Source: Zancudomyces culisetae HAW-14-8 (lineage: Eukaryota; Fungi; Kickxellomycota). From it: a stretch of DNA of 64,000 bases. A model generated the notes under the pieces. That model was not told where the DNA came from, did no database searches, and was given only the letters and a program-made list of their open reading frames with translations. The stretch spans positions 1,420,059 through 1,484,058 of the forward strand of contig JBNJNM010000010.1 in NCBI GenBank assembly GCA_052426225.1. Direction: 5' to 3'. Below are positions 36,031-56,700 of this stretch, one piece after another. The position numbers and the translations under genes are program-made. Every line of letters starts with the position of its first letter. Position 1 is the stretch's first letter.

Positions 36031-37390
36031 CTTTCGCGTACCCTTATACTCTGAAAATGAGTTTTTAATCTGATATCAATAGTAATATTTTCTGTTTTTG
36101 TATTTCGCTCTTTATATTACCAAATATAAACCCAATAAACTAAGTGTTATTTATACCATTAAAAATCTGGAAACTACAGAAATATAAACCATTCCTAAGT
36201 ATGGTTGTATAATTTCGATGAGATGGGTCATTAGTGTTTTTACTCTAATGGAACTAGTTTGAACATTATGTTACTTTGACTACTCGTTCTTAAATCTTGA
36301 TTTGAATGACGTGTTAATGCATCTTAGTTGGGGTGAATGAAGCCTTGTCCCAGCCTTCCGGATATTTAACTCTAAGCATGGAAATAAATACCCACAACAA
36401 CCATAACATATTCCTGAATACTAGCTACCAATTTGCGAAAATGGGGGTTGTATATAGTATATAAAAATAAGTAGAATGTCAGACAACTTTGAGGTAACGC
36501 TCGATGGGCATGAAATTCTTTAAGGTATGGAGGGAGATTGGGAATTTGAATTATAAAGGATTTTTTACTAAATTTGCTGTTAAATATATATAGGTAAACC
36601 AGTTATCTAATTATAGAATGTGAGAGATAAAACAGTAAAAAGTTAATACTGGCACATAATATTAACCTCAGAACAATCGAATTATAATGATACTTTAAAA
36701 ACTATAGATTAATAAAGTTTTTACTAATAGGTAAATTAGGGAGGAAAAATATTTATGCTTAATTACAAATTAAAGGTTTAGAATATTTAGTAAAGGTTCA
36801 TTTAAACATACATTCTTAAACAAAAAGAAAAAAATCTAAGATACAATTCAAACGACTTTTAATGCAAAGAGTTACAGTATTGGGAACAGACGCCTAAGAA
36901 AGGTTTGTAAGTTTATAACTATATAATAAGTATCAGTCACAAAAGTAATATATATTCGAATTAAAAACGAATGAAGATAGGAATTGGTAGGGTAATATTT
37001 GAATATTATTGACTTGCTTATATTTGGTAAGATTACTACAATTGAAGTAGTTATGTTGGAACAGCACTGATGTCTCAATTATATCAGGTCAGGATCACCT
37101 ATTATTTTCGTTTATCCAGACCTTTTATAATCGATTTAAAAATATTATACGCTATTAAATTATGATAAACTAAGAACCACAAGTAAAACCTATGCATATA
37201 GAACAAGTGCCATAATATTATATTCAATTAAGAATGACTGTTTTTTTCTATAACTCATTTCCTACTTACTTTTATATTAAGTTGGTCAATCTAATGTCCT
37301 ACTTTCCAAATAATAATTTCCTATTGTAATAATTGTAGATATTATAATTTATCTGATATATTTTTTCAGCTAATGTGATGGCTGAGTTTT

Positions 37391-37751
37391 GTATAGCATT
37401 GGGATGTCAGTTATACTCAGGTCGCGGATCACTTTACTGGTTCTGATTACCGTATTTCGAATGTTTTTAATATCTTTTATTATTGTTATATTATTATTAT
37501 AACACTAAGTAAACTATATCAGTATCAAGTGCTATTTGCTATTAATAAGAGTTAAAGCCGTATATGCAAAGTATTTTCTGTTAAGAAAGGCCAAAGATGC
37601 TATTTTCGTTGTCCACTCTCGTATTTTCACTTTGTTATTCACTTTACTATCTTAGATCGTTTGTGCTATATATTCCGCTTGCTCTCATTGGTAGTTTAAT
37701 CTGCTAAGGAATCGCAATTGATTCGCTAGTTAAAAGTATGTAGCCGTTATA
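37391..37751 (+). repeat. Outer repeat, left main copy (inverted relative to 53243-53608); degenerate tandem copy at ~37020-37330
   Basis: For example gttatactcaggtcgcggatcact vs revcomp gttatactcaggtctcggatcact, and cactttactatcttagatcgttt...cgcttgctctcattggtagtt shared with the right copy. Confidence 0.85.
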
Positions 37752-37868
37752 CTGCACTATATTAGTTTCGTTATGGTTTCATTGGATGATTTATTAGCCC
37801 CTGAAACGCACTTGATTCGCTCGCAAAAAAATAAATCTGATCATCTGTAGTTAAAAATTAAAAGATAT

Positions 37869-37942
37869 TGCTCTGTACAGGGATCGAACCTGTGACCTTG
37901 GCGTTATTAGCACCACGCTCTAACCAGCTGAGCTAACAGAGC
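37869..37942 (-). tRNA. tRNA-Ile (anticodon AAT)
   Basis: GCTCTGT acceptor stem, D-arm TAGCTCAGCTGGTTAGAGC, anticodon loop CT-AAT-AA in a TGGTG/CGCCA stem, T-loop GGTTCGATCC. Confidence 0.95.
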
Positions 37943-37950
37943 TGTTGTTG

Positions 37951-38157
37951 TGTTGTATAATTACATGTTTAACGTCCTACTGAGTAATATAATTACCCAG
38001 TATTATACAGGACGGGACTTTTATTATTATATATTAGGTCTATAATTATTGTGGGAGAAAAAGACAATTTATTAATTAATTCAAAACTAGACTATTTAAT
38101 GCATAAAATAATACTGATTAAATTAACCAATAAAATACAAGGAAATACAGGTATATA
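37951..38157 (+). repeat. Inner inverted repeat, left arm (~207 bp)
   Basis: Reverse complement of 41048-41253, with about 7 substitutions and 1 indel by eye. Confidence 0.92.
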
Positions 38158-41047
38158 ATTCCACTATATAACAGTTGTATTAGATTCAATTAATTATGAA
38201 TTCTAACTGGTTCTACTAGAGGGGTGGTATCACTAGACTGGGTTTAACCCTTTTCACTAGTTACCACTTTCTAGTCATACATATAAATGGAACCGGAACA
38301 TTTATATGGGTCAAAATTTGACAATTTATTTAAGATTCAAAATAATAATTTCTTAAATACTAAATTTTACTAGAAAAACTAATAAAATTACTAACTATAA
38401 AATTAACCAATAGTATGCAAACATTCTATTTTGCATACAACAGTTGTGTTATATTTTTTATGTACTATCTGATCAGTACGTTTGAGTAGCCTGCTGTTTA
38501 ATTCAGCTACTTCTGGTTCCGGTTGTGTAGCTAGTATCTTAACCGTGTATGCTTGTTTATGTTTTAATTATTATATTTATACTTAGATACTTATACTATT
38601 AATCTTGATTTGTTTATTTACGATAGTGTTATTAGGTAATGAGAGTAAAACTAATAGTTATTGATTATGTAAAAAAAGTTAGATTCAAAAAACTAATTAT
38701 ATCTGTTGTTTTTTCTCTGCACCTTTGTGCCATTTTTTTTGATATTAAATACTAAATAATTAAAAATAAAAATAAACTATTGATAGGTGTTCGATTGGAT
38801 AAAAAAAAACCTTTCGGAAAAAAATCCAACACGAACATTTCGCTATATGACAGTTGTGTCGTGAATTTAAATCATTTCAATTTATATTTTTTTCCAATGG
38901 GTTTTTAATAAATTGCAAAGATGGTTAAATTAAATTCACGTAACATCCTTGTAAATCTGAGAATCACACTGTCATAGATGAGTCATGGGAATCATCTATA
39001 AATGATTTACAACATCTTTTCCCATTCAACAAGGGGAAACCCCCTGTTTCAATAATATTATTATAATTCATATTTCACATGTTTAAAACAGTTATAACTT
39101 TATAATTAAATTTATTATAGTAGTAGTTCGTTAGACCCAAAAAATTATATAAGGGCAAATAATTTCTATCTAGTTTTCGATATGACTTTAGCAAATAAAA
39201 ATATAAAACTATAATATTCACACGACAGTGTTGTCGTATTAGTTTTTATATTATATGTATGGGCACTTTTTCCCACTGGGTTTTTCCCATACATTTGTTT
39301 AATTTTTAGTATTAATATCATTTAATTTTATTAACGCATTTATATGTTTCAAAATAAATCTGTGTAATTTATCATGCGGATAAATTACACCAAACCACGT
39401 GTGTTAACACGGGGTAACGATGCTGTTTTGAGTGAACTGTTAACATGATAAGATATGTAGGGGTAGAAAAGATAATCAACGCATCAATTAATAAAACATG
39501 TTTGAACAACAGAAGAACATGTTAGTGATTTCAAAACAATGTTGACATACAGAAAAACTATATAAATCCAACTTTTCTTCACTTTTTTAAAGGAAGCATC
39601 GAACTAATATTTAACTATCTGATTACTTTAATATATAATAAAACTTAATAAATAAATAATCACTAGTATACAAATAACCTAAATATTACAGTGTGTTGTA
39701 ATTAAGATTGCAGAAATTATCTGAGAGATTTTCTGCAACTAAACCTACATAAAGTTCTGCTAATAGAGGGGGATTGTTACTGGAATTAGTTTTACTTTAT
39801 TTAACCAGTCAACCCTACCTTTATAGCTTTTATTTAATTTAGTTTTATGTATTTATTACTTCAATAAATGCGATAAAACTGGGTACAATTACGCCCAACT
39901 CCTAAAATTTGGTGTGCAAAACAATTAATTTTGGTCCAAAAATTAGACTCTGATACCTTTCTGATACCCTTTGAAAATTGTGTTACGCTTCACTACCTAT
40001 GTATTTTTTTGGTTTTAGGTAGGTTTTTGCTCAAATCACAAATTTCAATTTTATAGAGTAAAATCAAGTATTTTAGAGCAAATTTGTATTTTATTTATGA
40101 ATAACTTTTAAAAATAAAAAGATAAAACCACCAAACTTGTGGTGGGGTTACTAGTAATATACTAGTACCTGACTAGCTATTTTATTAGAACTTTATATAA
40201 TAGAAACTTAAAATAAAAAAATTAAAACTGAATATTTCTCCGACATTTGGGTGATAATTTCACCCTAGTAATCCCAGATTACTAGCTCGAACACCCGAGA
40301 TAACGGTGGTTATTCGGTGTTTGAGAAGCTGTATGCTGTTCATCCAATAGTTTAGCTTGGATGGAACTAAGCATACAACAGTGTTTGTCAGATACTAACG
40401 TTTTTATGCAAGTATCTCTTATATTTTATACTACTATGCTAAATATAAAACTATGTTATTCTATTTTTAAATAATACTATGTTCTATTTCAGACCTAAGT
40501 TGTATATCTTTTTATTCCTAAATTAACTATTTATTGTGTAACTTTTATAAAAAACTAACTAAAAAACTCTTATATAAGATCTACTAAAAAATTATATCAA
40601 AAAACGAAATGTTATTAGAAAAAATCACTAGGATAAAAAAACTAATGCATTTCGGATTCGTAACCAGTTACGAATCGATTGTCAATTTGCTATATGACAA
40701 TTTTGTCTAAAATTAGTAGCATCTTATTGTATATGCACTTTTTCCCAATTGGTTTTTCCTCATACAACGTTTATTAGTTTATTATTAGTCTATTTATAGT
40801 ATTTAAACAATCAGAGACATACACCTACTGATTATTTAGTTAAGAATTGCAACAATATCATAAGGACATGGTTGCAATTGTCTTTCATAGCAGCTAATAG
40901 CTACACCACGTTGTAAACAACCAACGTGGAAAGTTAATCCTAGTACATATTTCTACCTATGAGTATAAAAATCATATCAGAGAATCTAAATAAAAAATCA
41001 TCAGGTAGTTTAATAAAAACACACTAAAATTTATTTTATAGTAGAAA

Positions 41048-41253
41048 TATATACCTGTATTTTCTTGTATTTTATTGGTTAATTTAATTAGTAATATTTT
41101 ATGCATTAAATAGTCTAGTTTTGATTAATTAATAAATTGTCTTTTTCTCCCAAAATAATTATAAACCTAATATATAATAACAAAAGTCCCGTCCTGTATA
41201 ATACTGGGTAATTATATTACTCAGTAGGACGTTAAACATGTATTTATACAACA
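41048..41253 (-). repeat. Inner inverted repeat, right arm (~206 bp)
   Basis: tatatacctgtatt...gtcccgtcctgtataatactgggtaattatattactcagtaggacgttaaacatg is the reverse complement of the left arm. Confidence 0.92.
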
Positions 41254-43574
41254 TATTTAATTGTATGTTGCCATGTTTAAGGTCCCATTTAGTGTTTTTT
41301 ACACCAAATAACACACGGGACGGGTCATTTTACTTACCTTTTATCTATATGCTGCGAATAATATATAGAAAATTATGATTTTGAAAAAGAGGACATTTAT
41401 TTAGTTTACCAAACTTTTCAATTTTATACAATAAAATCTACAAAAAATCTAACTAAAAATTACTAAACACAACTAACCAATGGATATGTTTCGCCTAGTG
41501 TAGGCATACAACAGTCGTAAATTAGAGTTTATTAAGTATAATACATACAGAATTTAGGCAGCGGTTTGATAATTGATACGAGAATCATTGGACGAGTTCA
41601 GACAACAGTTGTCATTTCAGTATCAATTTTTACATAGTTTATATTTACACCTTTTATTTATTTTCTTTATAAATACGACGACAAGGAATTCATTGAATCG
41701 TGTCGGAATAATATCTTTATTCTATATCCTTTATTTATAATTTTATGCTAAATTAAGGTTTAATATTACCAAAATTAATGCTTAGAAAAGTCCTGGACCA
41801 ATTAATAACCAGTAATAAAAACTAGTTTTAGTGTATAAAGTCTTGTACTGTACTTCACTTAATTGAGTTAATATAATGTATTATTACTCGACTATTTTTT
41901 TTAGGAATTTCAATTTATATAAATATTTATAGTATTTTTCATTTATACGTTTATTGTAGTAATAACATTCTGTTCTTTACATTTCCATTGATATTAAAAT
42001 TTGCAAGATAGTAGATTATTTAATTTATCATTTTTTTACTATTTTTACTCAATAAAAATTAGGATATTAACTCCATTTTCCAAATTAAGAAGTTAAACAC
42101 TAACTACTTACTAACTTAAAATACATTATATTTTACAGATCCTATAATTATTAGATTTGAATTTATTGTATATTTCTTTTATATTTTAATTTTTCTCATA
42201 ATTATGGATATATCATAGGCCGTTTAATTTGAATATAATATAGATATTTTTTATTCATATAGATTTCTATTAATATAATGAGATAAAATTACATTAGAAA
42301 TTATTTATGAATTAACTTGTGTTTGTTTAGACAATACCAATAATAATGATCTAACTATTTGTAAAAAAACATATTGTATAAATTTTACAACTAATAAAAT
42401 AATATCATCATAAAAAATGTGATTACTAAACTCTACAGTTATTAGGAAAGATTAATTTATATTTTGCTAATTTGTAACTTTTGAATTTTAACCAAATCTT
42501 ACTGTATCTGCTGCCATTGTAAAATCACAAGAACAGGTTATACACCTGTTATTATGCTATTAAAGTTTAGCCAATTTATATTTGTGGAGCTTTGTACACA
42601 TCTTATTACCATAAACCACTTAAACGAAGATCAAAATAACAATATTTATACTGAAATTTGCTTACGGATAAACCAATTGTATACAGTAGCCATATCATGG
42701 CTACAACATTTTTTTATAAAATTGTATTTATAAGTATATGTATTATCCATTAAGATTGTTTAGTATTATTTAGTCATTTTTTATCGTTAAATAATGGTAT
42801 AAAAGCTATAATCTGCTAAAAACTAAAGCGTCACAACAGAATAGATCACATGATTTTTTAATTTCATTCAGCTACTCTGTATTAGCATAAAAACTAACCA
42901 AATTAATATGTTGGAGCGACTTGGGAAACATCCCATAGCTGCAATATAAACTCAACCACCCCTTGAAATACATGCAAAACATCATTGCTTATAAAAATAA
43001 AAATGACCAGTCTTCTGCGGATTAGGGTTTGGCAATAAGAAGATATTTTCATTCGCCTATTATTTTGATTTAGATCTAAACTCAAAAGTTTTCCAGTTAC
43101 TATTTCTATATTCATAAAAATGTATACTGTGTTATTACTGTTTGATTACGCTATCACATTTGTAATTGCAATCAATACCATTGGAGATTCGTTATACAAC
43201 TGAATAGATTAATAAGCAAATAATCGTAGTTTATCAATTTCTGATTATATTCTTGCCAGGTTTTGCGGTAGAAAAGAAAAAAATGCAAATGATCTAAGTG
43301 GAATGGGATATACCAAATCAAATAGATCTATTACCATTTTTTTTTTTGCATTTAGTACTAAAAAAAACTATTTAAACGCCAATTTATTTCAAACAGAAAG
43401 TTGTAATTAGTATAAATATTACTTTTTTTTAAGATTTTATACTCTGTTTTTAATTACTGGTACAATAAAATATCATATAATATAAAGCAAAGACACAATT
43501 CTAAACCCTAAATCGACTATTGAAGATTGAAAAACAATATTCTGATATAAAAATACTAAGTTTAAACACAAATC

Positions 43575-44537
43575 ATGACTTCAAAATATTTATACAAGGG
43601 CGAAACCGGAATAAACTTCCCAAATGTAAAGTTTATTGTAACAGGGCAATATAAAAATCTACAATTGAATAATGACAAATTTAGTTTAAATGATGAACAT
43701 ACATATAACATAACACTATTTTACTTGGAAGAAACTGTGCCTGAATCATACCCTGATTCTAGTGCTTATTTCAAATATTATTGTAAATATCTATCAAATG
43801 TAAATAATAAATTATCATTATCACATGATAAGAAAAATGCGATATATATCGAGGGGTCAACTTGTAATGATTTATTGCAAGACGATTCGAGTGATATGTT
43901 GGTGAGTAGAGAAGAAAAATATCATCAAATATTCAATATAAGACATGGTGACCTGTATATGGATATGAATTTAAACTTTACCCCCGACAAAGATAGCGCA
44001 GTTAGTTTACAGATATATGCTGAATCAAACTTCACTCATCAAATGAAAGATAACCAATCAGTACCGGCAAAATTTGATGATAAGTATATCACGGCTAACG
44101 GCGTAAATATGTTAAACGACAGCGTGTACTTTATTTTACCGAAATTGGACGCAGAAACCTCTCTTGATTCTTATTTTTTAGAATCCGAATATTCAGATAT
44201 TACTGGCCATAGGGGACGTAAAGATTTTTTAGTTAGCGAAAAATTATATGCTGAAGGAGTTTACTTGAAATTTGAAATGATAAATGGTATATATTATTTA
44301 TTAATTAATGGGTATTATCTAGGCACTACAGCGGATAAGGAAATGCTTGTTTTATACTCAAATGTTAATAAAAATAACATAAAATTGATACTCACAGGTA
44401 TTAAAAGTATGTATTATATAATGGATTATGACGAAGAATATTTCTATGAATATTTTAATGGGAAATATTGCGCTTCTGAATTTTTCAATACAAAAAATAA
44501 CAACAGTGCATCCATATTCCAGTTTATTTCCATTTGA
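43575..44537 (+). CDS. Orphan intronless 320-aa protein, predicted tandem beta-trefoil-like; no signal peptide
   Basis: Long ATG-initiated ORF in very AT-rich DNA where random ORFs are short. Six ~40-50 aa pseudo-repeats of type [FY]xxxxG/KxYLx...LxL...AxxF. Confidence 0.7.
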   Translation: MTSKYLYKGETGINFPNVKFIVTGQYKNLQLNNDKFSLNDEHTYNITLFYLEETVPESYPDSSAYFKYYCKYLSNVNNKLSLSHDKKNAIYIEGSTCNDLLQDDSSDMLVSREEKYHQIFNIRHGDLYMDMNLNFTPDKDSAVSLQIYAESNFTHQMKDNQSVPAKFDDKYITANGVNMLNDSVYFILPKLDAETSLDSYFLESEYSDITGHRGRKDFLVSEKLYAEGVYLKFEMINGIYYLLINGYYLGTTADKEMLVLYSNVNKNNIKLILTGIKSMYYIMDYDEEYFYEYFNGKYCASEFFNTKNNNSASIFQFISI

Positions 44538-46505: not shown

Positions 46506-47251
46506 TGTCGGGTGAGGTTGGGTGCAGCCTCATCCTTTGTCGGGTTTTTCAATTGTAAAAAAACATGATCCATAATATCAGCAAATGGGTCACGTGATTC
46601 TTTGGGATCCACTTCCATAGAAGTGGCTCCCGAACGGTCACTATCAGATGAGTATCTGCCCTCATCTTTTTCTGACTGGATCCATCTGGGTCTAAATTTA
46701 CTCATGAAACCTGACATTCTTTATGTGAGATTTTAATAGCTTCTAATATGTCAAAACTTAATATTCATTAACTAGCCGTAGCACTATTCCTAATAAACTT
46801 CTTAATTATCCTAAACCTGGATTTTAATTCTGAATTGATATTTATTTATCTTACTTTCCTTTTTCTTATTAAAACTATCAAAAGAGCTGAGGAATCCTCA
46901 TCGAGTCTTCCTTCGCTTATATATATACTATTTTATTTAACCTAATAAAAGCTAATTCAAATAACCTATGTTTCTATTGTATATACTGAGTTGTATCGTG
47001 TGTTATCGTTGTTACTTCGTTTTCGTTTTCATATTGTTCCTATATTTGAATGTTGATTTCCTATAATCTTTTTAATTGTATTTTTCGTTTTATAATTTTT
47101 TTTGTGTTATTATATATATTTTCAAAAAAAATAATTATCATAGTATTTTCAGTGATCAACTTTTAATAGAATGTTAGTTGATTGTTTATGTAGTAAATTA
47201 AATAATTGTTAGAAAATGTGAATTCCGATCGACATCGGAATACACACGACA
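46506..47251 (-). repeat. 3' LTR
   Basis: Same length as, and apparently identical to, 51801-52546. Confidence 0.95.
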
Positions 47252-47263
47252 TCCCCCTCCTTA
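47252..47263 (-). other. Polypurine tract
   Basis: Minus strand AAGGAGGGGGA directly abuts the 3' LTR start TGTCGTG. Confidence 0.9.
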
Positions 47264-47281
47264 AGCTTGAATCGTCCCGAT

Positions 47282-50200
47282 TCATTGACTTGCTATACTT
47301 CGTATAGTCGATCTTGATCGTGCCTTTCGTATTTTTGTAATTTCCTTTCTTGGTTGCATGTATTTAACGAGCCTATCCACATGTACTGTGTCCAAATTGC
47401 CATCGCTGTCTGATATTTCAAAAATTCCGTGTTTTAAAATTTTTGTAATTCTGTATGGGCCAGTATTGCGCTCGTCAAAAATGCCTTGAATATCCTTATT
47501 GCTTCTAAGTACTTTTTCGCCTAATACAAATTCTCTTTGTCTTATGTTTTTGTTGTACCTATTTTCGTCCTGTAATTTAATTTTATTTCCGATCTCGAAC
47601 GCTCGCTTTCTATATCCTTGTAGTTTGTTAATAAATACTCCGTACTGGGTTATATTATTTACTAGATTATTAATATTCATCCTATGTTCCCATATCGCTG
47701 GTGTGAGTAACCTTTGTCCGTATAATATTTCCGCTGGGCTTCTACCTAGTGATCTGTGGTAACTCGTGCGCATTGATAACAACGCACGCCAAATGTATAT
47801 GTCCCAGGTTTTTGGTTTGCTTAGAACATATTTCCGAAGTAGTTGTTTAAGTGTTTGGATAGTTCTCTCTGTTTGTCCATTCGCTTGAGGTCTATAGGCT
47901 ACTATATGATTATGATTAATTCCCAAGAATTGGTTAAATAAACTACACTTTTCATTTGTAAAGTGGGTACCTCTGTCTGTAATAAGTTTTTCGGGTACGC
48001 CATATTTAGATACTATTTCTTCGGCAATAACTGCACATGTGGTATTTCCATCTGCTTTGACTGTAGGAATGGCTATAGGCCATTTCGTAAAGTAATCTAC
48101 GGCAACGTAGATGTACTTATTTCCAGCCTCAGTTACTTCCAAAGGGCCTGCCACGTCGATGCCCCAAATTTGAAATGGACGTGTAGCTTTAATTGAGTGT
48201 AAAGGCTCACTCTTTCTTTCTATATAGTTGCTCCTTTGGCAACGCTCACAGTTCCTAATAATTTTTTTAATTAATTTTCCAGTGTTCGGTGCGTAGTAGT
48301 TATCTTTCAGATAACTACGTGTACCTTCTAGGCCTCGGTGCTGCTCTTGGTGGATTCTTTTAATTAACTCTTCTATCCCACTTGGTTTGGGAAACTCCTT
48401 CCATTTATCTCCATCTTTTTTAAATATTATATCGTTATTTAGTGAATACTTATCTTTCACTTTATTTTCTTGCCTCGTTATTTTGCCTTTTAATTTTTCA
48501 TACCTCTCATCACTAATGTATAATACTTCTTCTTCCTGTATTGCTATCTTTTCATCCCAAGGAAAACGGCTCAAATGATCAGCTGGATTTTTCAAACCGT
48601 CTCGATGTATGACTTCGAAGTCATAATGCCGTAGCTTGGTTACCCAGCGTCCTAGCCTTCCTTTTCCAGGTGTATTTTTAAACAAGTTTACCAACGCTTG
48701 ATGGTCAGTAATAACTGTAAACTTCTTACCATATAGAAAATAGTGGAATTGGTCGATTGCCCATACAATCGCCAATCCCTCCAAATGCGTTATAGCATAA
48801 TTTTGTTCCGCTGGTGCTAGAGTGCGTGATGCATATGCAATAACCTGATCCTTTCCCTCTTTACCTTGTGCTAGTATGGCACCTAATCCTACTGTACTCG
48901 CATCTGTTATCAAGGTAAACGGCTGATCCCATTGTGGATACCTTAATATTGGTTCGTTTATTAGTTTTTCTTTTAATACTTCAAACGCTTCTGAACATTT
49001 TATATCCCAATTGAACTTAACGTCCTTCTTTAATAGTCCGGATATAGGAGCTGCTATTGTGCTAAAACCTTGGATAAACTTTCGATAATAGCCGACTGTT
49101 CCCAAGAAACTTCTGATTCCATGTTTATCTGTTGGTGGTTGTAACTTCTGTACTGCGTTGATCTTGTCTGGGTCCGGTTTCAATCCATCAGCAGATATTA
49201 CATGGCCTAGATATTTCAACTCCTTGTACCCTAACCTTGACTTTTTGCTGTTTAGTTTGATTTTTGCTTCATGTAAACACTTTAATACTTCCTGTATATG
49301 GTCAATATGCTCTTCCCAAGTGTGACTATAGATGATGATATCATCAATATACACCATCACAAACTTCCATAATAACTGCTCCAAAACCTTTTCCATCATA
49401 CGCTGAAACAATGCTGGCGCATTGGTGAGACCGAATGGAAGTACTGTAAATTGGTAGAGTCCTAAGCCTGGCCCTGGAGAAAATGCAGTGATTTCCTGGC
49501 TCGCCTCATCAAGTGGAACCTGCCAGTATCCACTTAGCGCGTCCAAAGATGTAAAGTAAACTGCTCCTTTTAATCGACTCAAGATTTCGTCCATATGGGG
49601 CAATGGATAAGAATCTGTTTTAGTTATTTGGTTTATTTTTCGAAAATCAACGCATATACGTTTTCCTCCATCTTTCTTATTCACCACCACCATTGGTGAG
49701 GAATACGGTGACTTTGATTTAATGATGACTTTTTGCTCTTCCATCTCCTTTAGCTGCGTCAATACCTCTTTCTGTAACTGATGTGCCAGTTTGTATGGCT
49801 TTTGGCGAATTGGGTGTGGTTCTAGCAATTCAATCTTTTCTGGCTCTACGTCCGCGGCATATAGTTCTTCTAACTTTTCGGCGAACATGTCTTGATTTTC
49901 ATTTACTATCAGCTCCAATTTATTTCTCTGACTGCTGTTTAATTTTTCATTTATCATGGTATCTTTTTCCGTTTCAGTTAGCATTACATTTGATTCAGAT
50001 TTCTTGCTATAGACCATTTGAATGGGTACGTAGTGTTCTTGATTATTTATTTTTACACTCATACTTGGAGGTGACATTTTAATATTTGTAGATAGCTGTG
50101 TCATTAGGTTCAATCCTAAAAGCAATAAATCCTTCCTTCCTTGATTGATAATCCTAAAATCTGTTGTGCACTTAAATGTATTAAATTCTAATACAACTGC

Positions 50201-52012
50201 TTTTGCTTCTTCTGTAATGTATTTCTCTCCTGATACACTAACAATATTTCTATTTCCTTGTTCTAAGGGTCCAATTTTTAATTCTTCCGCTAACTGTTTA
50301 CTCATTACGTTAACAGCTGCACCACTATCGCACTGAAATTTTACTTCATGTCCGTTTATTTTAACTGGCCCTACCATCGCTATAGCATGGTCCTCTTGAT
50401 TATTTTTTTCTTGGTTTAAATTTTTTGATTTTTTTGAATTTTCAATTTTTTTGGTTTCGATATCTTTATCTAATATAGTAACTAAATTAACTCCAGTATA
50501 TGGAGGTTGCTTATGAGTTTTTTTTGGAGCGGGTGAAGCGGTAGTCATTCTGACTTCAGGTATTTGTCTCGGTAATCTGCAACTAGTTGCATAATGCCCT
50601 CTCTGTTTACAGTTCCAGCAAACTATATCTCTGTTAATTTTAGCATTAAAATTTTTCTGGTGACCTTGGAATCTTCTTGGCTTGCTTTGGTATGAACTTT
50701 CTTCATTATCCTTCAACTCTGGGATTCCTAATTCCTTTTTGTAGTTTTTCACAAAGTTGCTAGGTTCTCTAGCAACACGATTTGGTCTTAAGGTATTCAA
50801 TTGCTTCTCTGCGGGTCTTCGCATTGCATTTATTTTCAACTGTTCGTTTTCTCTTGTACTCAGCATATCAATGATATCTGATAGTTCAAAATCTTTTTTC
50901 ATAGATATAAACTGGCGGTCCATTGAATTCAACATATAGTATGCCTTATTTTTCATTTCTCTCTTGCTTCTGATATCTAATATTTCAAATAGAGTCATCA
51001 GTTCTCCAAAACTTTCCACTGTATCCTTTGCGTACAAGTTGTAATTATTCAATCTCATTTCAGCTTTGTATACCCGTTCACTGTTATTGAAATATAATAA
51101 AAAGTGTTTGCAAAATTTTGCATAATCAGTATGTATTCTTCTTAAATAGTTAAATTTCTTTTTAGCTCCGGGTCCTATAAAAATCTCCATAACATTTAAT
51201 AAATCCTCTGTGGTTACCCCTGTAGCGTATGCTTCAATGTGTCGATTAAACTGATTCAAAAATCTTTGTGGTGTGTCATCTGAATCGTTATTAAATTCCA
51301 CTGGTTTTGGAAACATAATTTTTGATCGCTCCTCTATTCTCTCCTCTGTTAGTCCTGAGTTTATACGATCAATTCTTCTTTGTAACTCTTCTTTATCAGA
51401 TGATACTCCTAATAAGGTTGCTCCCAAGAAAGGGTTATCATTTGATACTGGAGGTAATTTTTGGCTGGTGCTAGCTTCGCTGTGGATGTTATGATCATCT
51501 ACATCCTCTTCACCTTGAAGAACTTCAAAACTTTCCTTCGGGGTTTGAAAAGTTTCTCTAGCCACAAAATTTGGTATTACTCCTCCAAACATTGAATTCC
51601 ACGACTTGATACTGCAGCTGCTACTTGTAGGGCTGATCTTCTGCACTTGCTCTTGGCAGCCTTTCTCCTCATATGTTTCGGTCTTCTGATATTGCATGAA
51701 CTTTGATACTGGGTTTAAAGTTCTCAGAGTGGGCGCACTCTGTTCTCTCGGTTCCATCTTTGGATGATCAACAAAATTGACCATCCTGTCGCTGACGCCA
51801 TGTCGGGTGAGGTTGGGTGCAGCCTCATCCTTTGTCGGGTTTTTCAATTGTAAAAAAACATGATCCATAATATCAGCAAATGGGTCACGTGATTCTTTGG
51901 GATCCACTTCCATAGAAGTGGCTCCCGAACGGTCACTATCAGATGAGTATCTGCCCTCATCTTTTTCTGACTGGATCCATCTGGGTCTAAATTTACTCAT
52001 GAAACCTGACAT
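47282..52012 (-). CDS. Gag-Pol polyprotein, single uninterrupted ORF (1576 aa)
   Basis: Zn knuckle CWNCKQRGHYATSC; protease CDSGA; RT LPFGLTNAP/YIDD; RNase H TDAS...EGLAIV...TDH; integrase HHCC, GIDVAGP, TDRG, NGQTER; GPY motif. Confidence 0.96.
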   Translation of the reverse strand: MSGFMSKFRPRWIQSEKDEGRYSSDSDRSGATSMEVDPKESRDPFADIMDHVFLQLKNPTKDEAAPNLTRHGVSDRMVNFVDHPKMEPREQSAPTLRTLNPVSKFMQYQKTETYEEKGCQEQVQKISPTSSSCSIKSWNSMFGGVIPNFVARETFQTPKESFEVLQGEEDVDDHNIHSEASTSQKLPPVSNDNPFLGATLLGVSSDKEELQRRIDRINSGLTEERIEERSKIMFPKPVEFNNDSDDTPQRFLNQFNRHIEAYATGVTTEDLLNVMEIFIGPGAKKKFNYLRRIHTDYAKFCKHFLLYFNNSERVYKAEMRLNNYNLYAKDTVESFGELMTLFEILDIRSKREMKNKAYYMLNSMDRQFISMKKDFELSDIIDMLSTRENEQLKINAMRRPAEKQLNTLRPNRVAREPSNFVKNYKKELGIPELKDNEESSYQSKPRRFQGHQKNFNAKINRDIVCWNCKQRGHYATSCRLPRQIPEVRMTTASPAPKKTHKQPPYTGVNLVTILDKDIETKKIENSKKSKNLNQEKNNQEDHAIAMVGPVKINGHEVKFQCDSGAAVNVMSKQLAEELKIGPLEQGNRNIVSVSGEKYITEEAKAVVLEFNTFKCTTDFRIINQGRKDLLLLGLNLMTQLSTNIKMSPPSMSVKINNQEHYVPIQMVYSKKSESNVMLTETEKDTMINEKLNSSQRNKLELIVNENQDMFAEKLEELYAADVEPEKIELLEPHPIRQKPYKLAHQLQKEVLTQLKEMEEQKVIIKSKSPYSSPMVVVNKKDGGKRICVDFRKINQITKTDSYPLPHMDEILSRLKGAVYFTSLDALSGYWQVPLDEASQEITAFSPGPGLGLYQFTVLPFGLTNAPALFQRMMEKVLEQLLWKFVMVYIDDIIIYSHTWEEHIDHIQEVLKCLHEAKIKLNSKKSRLGYKELKYLGHVISADGLKPDPDKINAVQKLQPPTDKHGIRSFLGTVGYYRKFIQGFSTIAAPISGLLKKDVKFNWDIKCSEAFEVLKEKLINEPILRYPQWDQPFTLITDASTVGLGAILAQGKEGKDQVIAYASRTLAPAEQNYAITHLEGLAIVWAIDQFHYFLYGKKFTVITDHQALVNLFKNTPGKGRLGRWVTKLRHYDFEVIHRDGLKNPADHLSRFPWDEKIAIQEEEVLYISDERYEKLKGKITRQENKVKDKYSLNNDIIFKKDGDKWKEFPKPSGIEELIKRIHQEQHRGLEGTRSYLKDNYYAPNTGKLIKKIIRNCERCQRSNYIERKSEPLHSIKATRPFQIWGIDVAGPLEVTEAGNKYIYVAVDYFTKWPIAIPTVKADGNTTCAVIAEEIVSKYGVPEKLITDRGTHFTNEKCSLFNQFLGINHNHIVAYRPQANGQTERTIQTLKQLLRKYVLSKPKTWDIYIWRALLSMRTSYHRSLGRSPAEILYGQRLLTPAIWEHRMNINNLVNNITQYGVFINKLQGYRKRAFEIGNKIKLQDENRYNKNIRQREFVLGEKVLRSNKDIQGIFDERNTGPYRITKILKHGIFEISDSDGNLDTVHVDRLVKYMQPRKEITKIRKARSRSTIRSIASQ
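51783..51800 (-). other. Primer binding site, probably for a tRNA-Ser
   Basis: TGGCGTCAGCGACAGGAT directly follows the 5' LTR and is complementary to ...ATCCTGTCGCTGACG-CCA. The G discriminator and GACG end are typical of tRNA-Ser. Confidence 0.75.
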
Positions 52013-52546
52013 TCTTTATGTGAGATTTTAATAGCTTCTAATATGTCAAAACTTAATATTCATTAACTAGCCGTAGCACTATTCCTAATAAACTTCTTAA
52101 TTATCCTAAACCTGGATTTTAATTCTGAATTGATATTTATTTATCTTACTTTCCTTTTTCTTATTAAAACTATCAAAAGAGCTGAGGAATCCTCATCGAG
52201 TCTTCCTTCGCTTATATATATACTATTTTATTTAACCTAATAAAAGCTAATTCAAATAACCTATGTTTCTATTGTATATACTGAGTTGTATCGTGTGTTA
52301 TCGTTGTTACTTCGTTTTCGTTTTCATATTGTTCCTATATTTGAATGTTGATTTCCTATAATCTTTTTAATTGTATTTTTCGTTTTATAATTTTTTTTGT
52401 GTTATTATATATATTTTCAAAAAAAATAATTATCATAGTATTTTCAGTGATCAACTTTTAATAGAATGTTAGTTGATTGTTTATGTAGTAAATTAAATAA
52501 TTGTTAGAAAATGTGAATTCCGATCGACATCGGAATACACACGACA
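51801..52546 (-). repeat. 5' LTR (contains the gag start codon at 52012)
   Basis: Direct repeat of 46506-47251. Confidence 0.95.
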
Positions 52547-53242
52547 CTACATAATTATCACAAAATATTAGTAAATTAATTATTATACGTAAATTAAGAA
52601 ATAAAATACTAATTATCCACTGAGTGTTATCAATATAATTCACTATTGACTGCAGTTCAGAATTAACAAATTAGCATGCTAAGTATTACAGATTATTAAA
52701 GTCTCTCGTTGGTAGTCATAATCTGCTATGAATCGAGTTTATTTGTAGCAAACAGGGTGTAACCGTTAATTACACTATCAATTTAAAATTCGATGACAAA
52801 TATATGATCTGTAAAAAAATTCAATAAAAAATACTCATGTTATATAATAATTTATAACCTTTTTGTTAGATAATCAATTATAATTCAGAATAGATTAACG
52901 CTACCAATCAAAGGAAACGGGAGCTATAATTAATATAATCTTTGTTAGTATAATGAATGGCAGAGCGATAAGTACAAAAAAATAATTATTGATATTTTAA
53001 CGATATACTTCACATTACGTATTTTAATGAATTGTGAGTAGTTACAATACTTATTAATTATCGTGTCCACTTTGCGTTTAGAACAAATAATAAAAATAAT
53101 AAAAGTAGTTTTAATAATCAAGAAAAATATACAGAACTAGTATAGAAATGCAAGCCACGAAAAGATGACAAATCCAGTGCTAAGCTATGCTAAAAAAATT
53201 ACCTCTGAACAAAATATCAATAATTATATGAACATCTTGTAT

Positions 53243-53608
53243 TATAACCAATACATTCTTTTTGTAGTGAATCAATTCGATTCCTTAGTAGAATATAACT
53301 ACCAATGAGAGCAAGCGTGATAAATAGTAAAAACGATCTAAGATAGTAAAGTGAATAACAAAGCGAATATAACGAGAGCGGACAACGAAAACAGTTTTTT
53401 TTTCTTTTCTTAACAGTTAATACTTTACATATACGTCTTTAATTCTTATTAATAGCAAATAGCACTTGATATTGATATAGTTTACTTGTTGTTTTATTAT
53501 TATTATAACAATAATAAAAGATATTAAAACATTCCTATTACAGCAATGAGAACCATTGAAGTGATCCGAGACCTGAGTATAACCGACATTACCAGTGTTA
53601 AACTATAC
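53243..53608 (-). repeat. Outer repeat, right main copy; degenerate tandem copy at ~52890-53235
   Basis: Inverted match to 37391-37751. Tandem copy shown by ccagtgctaagctatgctaaaaaaattacctctgaacaaaatatcaat (~53174) vs ccagtgttaaactatactaaaaaattaccattgaacaaaatatcaat (~53592), and ctaccaatcaaaggaaacggga vs ctaccaatgagagcaagcgtga. Confidence 0.85.
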
Positions 53609-53679
53609 TAAAAAATTACCATTGAACAAAATATCAATTAACTTTTAAATATCTAAAATAAACAAAAAATGCAAAATAG

Positions 53680-53753: not shown

Positions 53754-56700
53754 ACATTTTTTAAACAACTTTTATTATTATATATTATTAACCCTTTAGG
53801 TATTAGTTTTTCACCATTAGGTTTTCTAGTTTATAAAGAATTGAATACAAAGTGAATAAAAAACTATCATTATGACAAAAAACTAAACGGAGAATAAATT
53901 TATTAATCTGATATTGTACAACTGAGTAGAGCTATTAAGTAGAAATCAACTACATTGTCGACGCATATATAATCCGCACGACAATTTTTTGTTTATTTAT
54001 TTTACAACTTTAATATTTTACTACATATTTTATACAATTTAGGGATTTACCATAACAATCGTTGAACAATCTACAGATTCGCTTCGTCTATTGTTTATTA
54101 TATTGTTTAATTTAGTATAATAAGCTAGTTTTTATTATTTTTTTTACTTTTTATAGCGAAAGGGAAAATGGTATATAAAAACACCAATTTCCAAAATAAG
54201 GAAAAGTTGTACTTTTCCGACCTTCTAATCCACAAAAAATAAAATATTTTATAATACTAAAAATAACTAAGAATTTATGTAGTTGATTTTTTAAGTATGA
54301 CAAGCTTTGTCGTGTAGTGAAAATACTTGAGGTCCTACTTGGTAACTTTCGCTCAAAGTACTATGCGGGATGGGCTATCTTCTATTAACTATAACATATT
54401 ATAATATATTTTCTAACTTAAAAGTATCTTTATTTACAACAATCATAGTTATCAACTTGATAAGATCACTTTAAATATTTAACTTGTAGTTGATTTAGTA
54501 TATTCACTTAGCTTAATTATAGAGCATCAGTATTTTATCACTTAAACTTTACTCCTAATGAACATTAAATAATTCTCATATTTTTTGAATCAATCTGGCG
54601 TTTGATTCAATTTTTTTTATCGATAATATAACAAACAAAGTATATCGATATATTTACTTAATATGAATATGATATTTTGCCTTTAGTATGATCCAAAATT
54701 CACTACTATTGCTCACAATTTTTACTATAAATTTTTTCTATAAATTTTTTCTTTTATTACAATATTAACATTATATTTAAATACATATAATGACGATTTT
54801 GTTGTTATAATTAATAATATGTAATTATCCTTTAAAATCTCTTTAAAAAATAATCAACGATTCTAGTAAATAAAAATCTAATTAAAATATTCATTTTGAC
54901 ACACATTTCTCACGTTTTGTTTGTTCATCGTTTCTATTGCATAAATACAAAACTATGAAAATTTGTCAAGCAAAAGCCTATCAATCATAATTTAAATCTA
55001 ATGTTCATTGTACTTCTAATAACATATCCCCAAACTCCAGTTAGATCATGTGTTCCGATATCCTCAGCTCTCCTTTGTCCCACTTTAGTATGCTGTCAAT
55101 CTCGGGTAAAATATATATAATGTGATATTAGGGTTTCAGGTTATGTTATTGCCAGATTGTAGTGTTCTTATCGACTTTTCATAACATATACTTCTTTATT
55201 AATTCTAAAATACGTTGTAAACGTTTTTCCATTTGTAAACTAATAATAATCTCGATTGTCATTTATTCTCTTGTTATATTTAGTACACATCAAACTTGCG
55301 TTATGAAAAACATAAATTTAATAATTGGGAATCAAATAAATACTGACTAAATTGTTTACGAGATACATGGTTTAATTGGGAGAATTTCTACAATATATTA
55401 TTAATATTTTAGATAGAATTATCTGGTATTAGCTTGGTTATAGCTAATCAAATCTACGTTATAATTAATATTTATTAAAAATACGTACCTAGTAGATATT
55501 TGGCAATGTCTATTCCTCTATACACTTGTAAATTAGATTAGAAATAGTATAAGTCGTTTACATAAACTGAGTGCACTATTTAATAGTTGTGACTTTTCTA
55601 ATATTTACCAAATACTAACCTAATAATATTATCGTCATATTCGTAATCTGGTATTATAACATATTCATGCTTGCAAAAAAGTAAAAGTTAGTGGTTATAG
55701 CAATTATATTGTACTGAGAACATTTTACTATATTTTAGAATTTTATATAATTAAATAGTGCGTTATCTGCCATATTGCTATAATTATAATTCTTGATGTT
55801 TTAATCCACAAATTAAATTACAACTCTATTTAAATAGCCACAAGAATATAATTTAGGACCTGTGCACATTTTAAACAGCACATTGCAATTTATTGAATTA
55901 AAAGGTTAAGGTTGAAAGTTAATAATTGAATTTATATCATATCAACTGTAGATATGTAAAGTCTAGACTATCAGAAATTCTCAATTAATATCAGAACTCT
56001 ATAACATTAATAATTATTTATAGAATATTTAGTTTAAATTGCATTTTATTAATTTTTCTATATACATAGTACTCATAGTTTGTATAATCTCCAATACTCC
56101 GATTGATACGGCAGTCTTGTGAGTAATATAGGTTTGAATTTAATTAACTAGTAATTTTTGTCTATTTGATGATTTTCTATAAACACTTTATAACCAAGCA
56201 TTGTGATTATAGGCAAATGCCAATTACCTAGTCACACTAACTAGAGTATGATGTTATTAACTTTAAGGTATAAAAGTTTTACTGGAAACAATAGTTGCTA
56301 TGTATTTTTTTGTATGTTCATTCATTGTTGATTAGCACCAGTAAAAAAATTGCTAATTAATACCTGAATTTTCAGATATAACCAAAAATGTAGTAAATCA
56401 TACGTTTTTAGACACTATAGCGTCTAGAATGTATAGTTGTTACATTTGTATTTTTCCATAGGGTTGATTCGAGCCAAACCAAATGGCAATGCTAAATACA
56501 GAAAATAGACTTTCAAGAGTCTAGTTGCGATTATCCCACCAATTCCCTGAATATTTTAGCCGCAAGTTGCTAGTGATAATCTCGATTAGGTTGGGCATGC
56601 TGTACTAGTAAATGTTTAAAGATTCTAAATCTGCAAACTCAGCCAATCTAGACTTAATCAGATAAAAAGCGTGGTTTTCTATTAGGCGCTTCCAGCATAG

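Follow-up and report, generated by a model that had tools for sequence, protein, structure and literature searches.

The stretch of Zancudomyces culisetae HAW-14-8 DNA analyzed here (64,000 nt; hereafter the window, to whose positions all coordinates refer) carries a tRNA-Ile(AAT) gene on its minus strand, and the region upstream of this gene, from 37951 to 41893, is a stack of 11 solo long terminal repeats (LTRs) from about ten families, the first of which lies 8 nt from the 5' end of the tRNA. The open reading frames (ORFs) of the window are fungal in character (Zn2Cys6 factor, CHS5), and one polyprotein of this genome shows 99% identity to a protein of Z. culisetae. An earlier, sequence-only reading had described 37951-41750 as an array of one diverged 220-270 bp unit with constant flanks and variable, still-pairing hairpins, and made no mention of the tRNA gene, which is the organizing feature of the stack. 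The LTR units are designated U1 to U11, numbered outward from the tRNA gene and distinct from the LTR regions that are also called U3 and U5; fetched genomic loci bear L-numbers, and contigs C-numbers.

The region splits into 11 segments of 222-687 bp, mostly bounded by TG...CA and set 3-5 nt apart, and it runs on to 41893 beyond the limit first proposed. Four of the 11 units are of the 220-270 bp size, the others measuring 314-687 bp, and they are mostly unrelated: kinship was limited to U1 and U9 (full-length, 95%, inverted) and to an 87-bp patch common to U5 and U8 (76%). The TG...CA termini, which include short inverted repeats, are intact in U1 and U3-U7 and mutated at one end in U2 and U8-U11, the outer units being decayed at their termini; intact termini are present in other copies of U1/U9, U2, and U10. 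Beyond U11 comes a T run resembling that upstream of empty tRNA genes. No tandem repeats other than two weak short ones were found in the stack region. The motifs quoted in the sequence-only reading were all located within 1 nt (unit heads at 37964, 38243, and 41272; stems at 38280, 38413, 39708, 40265, 40655, and 40906), and the reverse copy ending at 41240 is present (arms 96% and 93%), whereas the AAYTAACCAAT flank is missing from the 687-bp unit that holds the example given at ~40331. The genome search for more units, which that reading had recommended, was productive: segments of the region were matched one by one, in differing order, at other tRNA loci.

Judged from their sequence, the units are LTRs of Ty3/gypsy elements and of elements resembling TRIMs (terminal-repeat retrotransposons in miniature); the earlier suggestion of stacked transposon ends was, as such solo LTRs, right in kind. 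Direct pairs flanking an internal region were found for U1, U3-U8, and U10. By pair spacing, six units (U3-U8) belong to Ty3/gypsy elements of 5-6 kb, and for four of them a primer binding site (PBS), a polypurine tract (PPT), or an integrase was identified. U6 has a PBS on one side and a PPT on the other (L002-L017), a PPT precedes the second copy in the pairs of unit U4 and unit U5, and the parents of U6 and U7 are known from the integrase end only. Five full-length tRNA-adjacent elements have the domain order gag-protease-reverse transcriptase (RT)-RNase H-integrase with no match to a chromodomain, and the best PDB match of a full-length element was Ty3 Gag-Pol (E 4e-109). In the integrase tree, which has several inner forks open and no Ty3 row, the tRNA-adjacent elements and those of Smittium culicis form part of a Harpellales group. 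Furthermore, all seven tRNA-adjacent integrases share a tail motif after GPY/F (M-I/V-P-E/D-V/I, then L-R and F/Y-R/K), which is missing from the non-tRNA-adjacent element of the window (46506-52546); the sharing may only reflect kinship. One related Smittium element with the tail motif (S. culicis, L041 5525-6673) is followed on its own strand by a 416-N assembly gap and then by tRNA-Pro in a Pro-Val-Glu-Met cluster of tRNA genes, a single gapped case. No tRNA was found on Smittium contigs L042 and L043, which are too short to inform. The window element itself is a full-length Ty3/gypsy element with identical 746-bp LTRs, a CTAC duplication, and a 1576-aa frame starting within the LTR; it does not lie beside a tRNA 5' end and was ruled out as a parent of any stack unit.

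Copies of U1 form pairs spaced 784-785 bp apart at four loci, a PBS adjoining the 5' LTR in all four, and U10 forms pairs at three loci with a PBS adjoining the 5' LTR in two; the corresponding elements measure about 1008 and 990 bp. A pattern joining the PBS to the LTR start had six genome matches, all on the 5' LTR of U1/U10 pairs, and none in the control. Pair spacing and PBS point to LTRs of ~1-kb elements that we class as TRIM-like by size, LTR pair, and PBS; examples of such U1 and U10 pairs lie at C6:1289909-1290915 and C21:1075705-1076690. Three 220-270 bp types occur in the stack, and two of them trace to such elements.

Placement relative to tRNA genes is narrow. At 11 of 20 tRNA loci taken by descending Rfam score, an LTR starts no more than 9 nt from the mature tRNA 5' end, and over about 20 loci the offset is 3-9 nt, mostly 6-8. 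Counted by hand across 55 tRNA loci, an integrase core lies 0.95-1.7 kb upstream on the same strand at 17, against 0.18 expected, in a genome with at least 150 integrase cores. Moreover, matching 4-mers that mark a target duplication surround U1, U2, U3, and U5 (GTTG three times, GTGT), and the flanks of seven full-length or tandem elements gave five matching 4-bp duplications and, in addition, one A-run match. The duplicated 4-mers vary by locus (ACAA, CACT, CCAA, ACTG, CAAT), so the site appears to be set by position and not by sequence. In L027, an element lies in the 6-7 nt that separate two paired tRNA genes and is upstream of the second one. As for orientation, U6 runs the same way as the tRNA at each of the seven tRNA-adjacent loci examined, and the U1, U6, U7, and U10 families mostly do so, with U9 (an inverted U1) as an exception; the unit U4 and unit U5 families point away from the tRNA, unit U5 at the loci seen. 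The idea that all units lie on the tRNA's strand was rejected, the PPT of U4 and U5 being on the other side.

Best identity to another copy drops with distance from the tRNA, from ~100% (U1) to 93% (U10) (rho -0.92, p 1.6e-4), so the stack appears to grow at the tRNA side. GTCG stands on both sides of U10 in L018, and because of this U10 is read as clipped into the first bases of U11. Both full-length and solo forms of the elements are present in the genome. We consider it almost certain that a tRNA-targeted Ty3/gypsy clade, with TRIM passengers, builds the LTR stack upstream of tRNA genes. Elements of this clade, and small non-coding TRIMs borrowing its enzymes, would integrate 3-9 nt upstream of the mature tRNA 5' end; each integration would duplicate 4 bp at the target, as genomic copies show, and recombination between LTRs after insertion would, as in established retroelement biology, leave a solo LTR. 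Since the tRNA promoter is internal, the gene would remain a target and successive elements would insert tRNA-proximally, a new element landing in the gap that separates the tRNA from the previous LTR, at times clipping the latter's first bases, and pushing older LTRs outward. Insertion of this kind would be expected to leave 4-nt spacers and an age order, and the GTTG and GTGT spacers agree with it. The shared unit flanks would be the TG...CA ends used by integrase, and the hairpins would be cis-acting RNA elements of the parent retroelements. Most likely, the integrase is tethered to the RNA polymerase III (Pol III) initiation complex (TFIIIB/TFIIIC), as in Ty3, the source of this proposal (PMC5911963).

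Several observations weigh against this account. No parent was found for U2, whose 35 genome matches lack a regular pair spacing; the parentage of U3 and U8 comes from a single pair each, and the genome-wide parent search covered U1-U10. The identity gradient is confounded by family activity, and it was computed from rounded identities of the best hits out of 40 scored candidates. In addition, the 4-mers flanking U4 and U6-U11 do not match. A tRNA-Phe locus on contig C6 shares the distal 1.1 kb at 95% (41241-42344 against L018 2590-3692, comprising U10, U11, and 450 bp of flank), which suggests that distal parts of the stack were duplicated or exchanged between tRNA loci and, together with the mismatches, that later recombination or duplication edited the record.

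Perfect stems (at least 8 bp, at least 2 GC, loop of at most 30) number 13 in the 3943 bp of the stack against 1.3 +/- 1.2 (maximum 4) in 20 dinucleotide shuffles, a comparison proposed by the sequence-only reading that came out in its favor; their density is 3.3 per kb versus 0-1.0 per kb in five control regions. Likewise, across 17 LTR families, folding is more stable than in controls for both terminal 70-nt windows (mean z -1.7 and -1.6 vs -0.16, p 2.6e-4). The stems are concentrated at the ends of the LTRs, and several of them fold more stably on the RNA strand of the element, with an advantage of 3-4.6 kcal/mol for U1, U10, and the U6 hairpin, which lends partial support to the proposed selection on single-stranded DNA or RNA structure. 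Three short-LTR families have in common a bulged stem-loop on the element strand, ~15-20 nt from the PBS. Its outer stem is conserved and its bulge measures 7 nt, while the inner stem varies between families yet pairs, G-U pairs included; one of the families has a GAAA loop. The earlier claim of variable yet pairing stems holds for these three families, by inspection of pairing. Beside the PBS of TRIM-like LTRs, this stem-loop is probably a packaging or priming signal. The U5-region-end hairpin of the U6 copy in the stack (39694-39745), compared with other copies, resembles a small hairpin inversion.

With regard to the constant flanks, ATAYAACA stands as the LTR terminus, and the GT after it is target duplication: following ...ACAACA, it differs in other genomic copies. 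The AAYTAACCAAT motif is, at a guess, a CCAAT box in the U3 region. Near the start of that region, hairpins like the poly(A) triple-helix element (ENE) occur in U3, U4, U5, U7, and U8; units U3 and U5 pass a strict scan that had 0 matches in 40 kb of controls, and U4, U7, and U8 were judged by eye. For U4, U5, and U7, the hairpin is on the strand that the PPT or integrase indicates. In their predicted folds they resemble ENEs, with a lower stem, two U runs, and a short upper stem, on the element strand and in the LTR part that becomes the 3' untranslated region, but their upper stems have only 2-4 bp. A strong association of ENEs with LTR retrotransposons of plants and fungi is reported (PMC12501189), and the U-rich loops of the five LTRs are probable poly(A) clamps.

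It is conceivable, although we lean against it, that the Harpellales clade evolved its own Pol III tether (the motif after GPY/F, with the 3-9 nt offset), that family-specific cDNA or integrase features fix the opposite orientations, and that the TRIM bulged stem-loop is the packaging or priming signal; if true, tRNA targeting would have arisen independently in this clade, along with a natural switch of orientation. That the integrase instead reads DNA, such as a GT-rich word at the LTR end or in the tRNA leader, rather than the Pol III complex, we regard as very unlikely: the GTTG/GTGT-like spacers of the stack and the clipping of previous LTRs would suit it, but the duplicated 4-mers differ freely among loci at a steady offset, the L027 element lies upstream of the second gene, and the identity gradient puts new insertions at the tRNA side only.

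A domesticated stack, with a host function as a structured non-coding RNA cluster or as a chromatin or centromere element, seems to us extremely improbable. The hairpins persist, and the centromeres of Schizosaccharomyces japonicus are marked by tRNA-linked retroelement clusters (PMC4600332); however, the Rfam search of the stack, at gathering threshold and at E<=5, returned the tRNA as the sole match, so that the RNA cluster entertained by the sequence-only reading found no family, the outer unit termini are decayed, unit order differs at every locus, and the parent elements account for the hairpins. The cassette-like array also suggested there, integron- or shufflon-like and worked by a site-specific recombinase on single-stranded hairpins, can practically be dismissed even with units in differing orders at many loci and a hairpin density ten times chance, given that the units elsewhere are the two ends of RT elements with PBS and PPT, that the 4-bp duplications flanking them are the mark of a DDE integrase, that the linked recombinase sought was absent from the ten large window ORFs that were scanned, and that PBS, PPT, or an enclosed integrase refutes it for U1, U4-U7, and U10. 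Ends of miniature inverted-repeat transposable elements, Helitrons, or piggyBac elements were rejected, the termini being TG...CA with variable 4-bp duplications instead of long terminal inverted repeats at TA/TTAA sites or TC...CTRR ends.

Table 1. Features of the LTR stack upstream of tRNA-Ile(AAT), in window coordinates.
Feature	Position	Strand	Evidence and remarks
tRNA-Ile(AAT), insertion target	37869-37942	-	ARAGORN, Rfam
U1, 223-bp solo LTR of ~1.0-kb TRIM-like element	37951-38173	-	GTTG both sides; 40 full-length copies; PBS
U1 bulged stem-loop near U5-region end	37967-38020	-	Fold
U2, 265-bp solo LTR, laid out like U1/U10	38178-38442	- (from layout)	GTTG both sides; 35 matches
U3, 406-bp solo LTR	38447-38852	- (from hairpin)	One pair 5014 bp apart on C13; ENE-like hairpin ~38785-38830
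U4, 371-bp solo LTR, opposite orientation	38857-39227	+	Pair 4903 bp apart; PPT; weak ENE-like hairpin ~38875-38915
U5, 459-bp solo LTR, opposite orientation	39232-39690	+	GTGT both sides; at least 5 pairs 4990-4994 bp apart; PPT
Unit U5 clear ENE-like hairpin	39255-39294	+	Fold, strict scan
U6, 687-bp solo LTR, Ty3/gypsy family with 1513-aa frame	39694-40380	-	Pairs 5.7 kb apart, integrase between; PBS and PPT
U6 long hairpin at U3-region start	40325-40380	-	Fold
U7, 314-bp solo LTR, family with 1486-aa frame	40386-40699	-	Pairs ~4860 bp apart, integrase between; ENE-like hairpin ~40605-40655
U8, ~324-bp decayed solo LTR, start related to unit U5	40704-41027	+ (presumed)	Pair 4899 bp apart; ENE-like motif ~40728-40765
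U9, second U1-family LTR, inverted vs U1, 95% identical	41032-41253	+	Sequence comparison
U10, ~255-bp solo LTR of second ~1.0-kb TRIM-like element	41259-41513	-	Three pairs 734 bp apart; PBS in two
U10 bulged stem-loop	41274-41328	-	Fold
U11, ~380-bp decayed LTR, outermost	41514-41893	not assigned	76% to stack unit in L034; U10 inserted in its first bases

Other features accompany tRNA genes of this genome. Head-to-tail tRNA pairs with spacers of 3-6 nt (Thr-Thr, Leu-Ala) are common, as seen in L027, L031-L034, L036, L037, and L006, and elements insert in such spacers. At L035 (2363-8924), a 2.9-kb element in tandem lies 3 nt upstream of tRNA-Thr; its gag-protease frame of 840 aa gave no RT or integrase match, and it is a non-autonomous coding element on the same target. 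A second LTR family of ~430 bp (TGTAATA...TACTACA; 37322-37756 and 53237-53660), with copies 72-83% identical, occurs at no fewer than 11 loci, in either orientation and ~20-240 bp downstream of tRNA genes, mainly of genes with upstream stacks, a placement that resembles that of Skipper-2/TRE3; a PBS adjoins its copy in L034. In the region 53754-54450, the 5' end of a tRNA-Val lacks an intact LTR, but a third short-LTR family is represented by a decayed copy at ~54310-54410. Just past the stack end, an ORF of 320 aa (43575-44537) has no Pfam match.

Compared with known systems, the Zancudomyces elements are like Ty3 of Saccharomyces cerevisiae in their Ty3/gypsy domain order, GPY/F motif, and lack of a chromodomain match, and in lying a fixed short distance upstream of tRNA genes, where solo LTRs are left. 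The target duplication of Ty3 is 5 bp, whereas that of the Zancudomyces elements, which have a single open frame, is 4 bp. Their offset of 3-9 nt from the mature 5' end also differs from the ~15 of Ty3 (PMC5006619), and about ten families plus TRIMs use one site, in stacks of 11. Tj1 of S. japonicus likewise inserts upstream of Pol III genes with an orientation bias relative to the tRNA (PMC4600332), but it makes a 5-bp duplication and always takes the tRNA's direction, unlike the Zancudomyces families, which are biased both ways. The dictyostelid element DGLT-A shares the single gag-pol frame, the absence of a chromodomain, and solo LTRs upstream of tRNA genes, but inserts 13-33 bp upstream; among dictyostelids, an offset of 2-6 bp is known only for the non-LTR element Dp_NLTR-A (PMC5006619). 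The ~1.0-kb elements behind U1 and U10, with two short LTRs and a PBS, resemble TRIMs as defined previously (PMC4558846) and differ in sharing the tRNA-upstream target. We found no report in the literature of position-specific tRNA targeting in Zoopagomycota/Harpellales, and the genome paper (PMC12611240) mentions neither LTR nor tRNA.

In brief, the stack is a known kind of system in a new host group and not a new class, extending the reach of tRNA targeting to Zoopagomycota, in an insect-gut fungus. In stacks of this kind, the activity of families at a single site is recorded in order. Sister families that share the integrase tail motif and are biased to opposite orientations give a comparative way into the question of how integrases of the Ty3 type read the Pol III complex.

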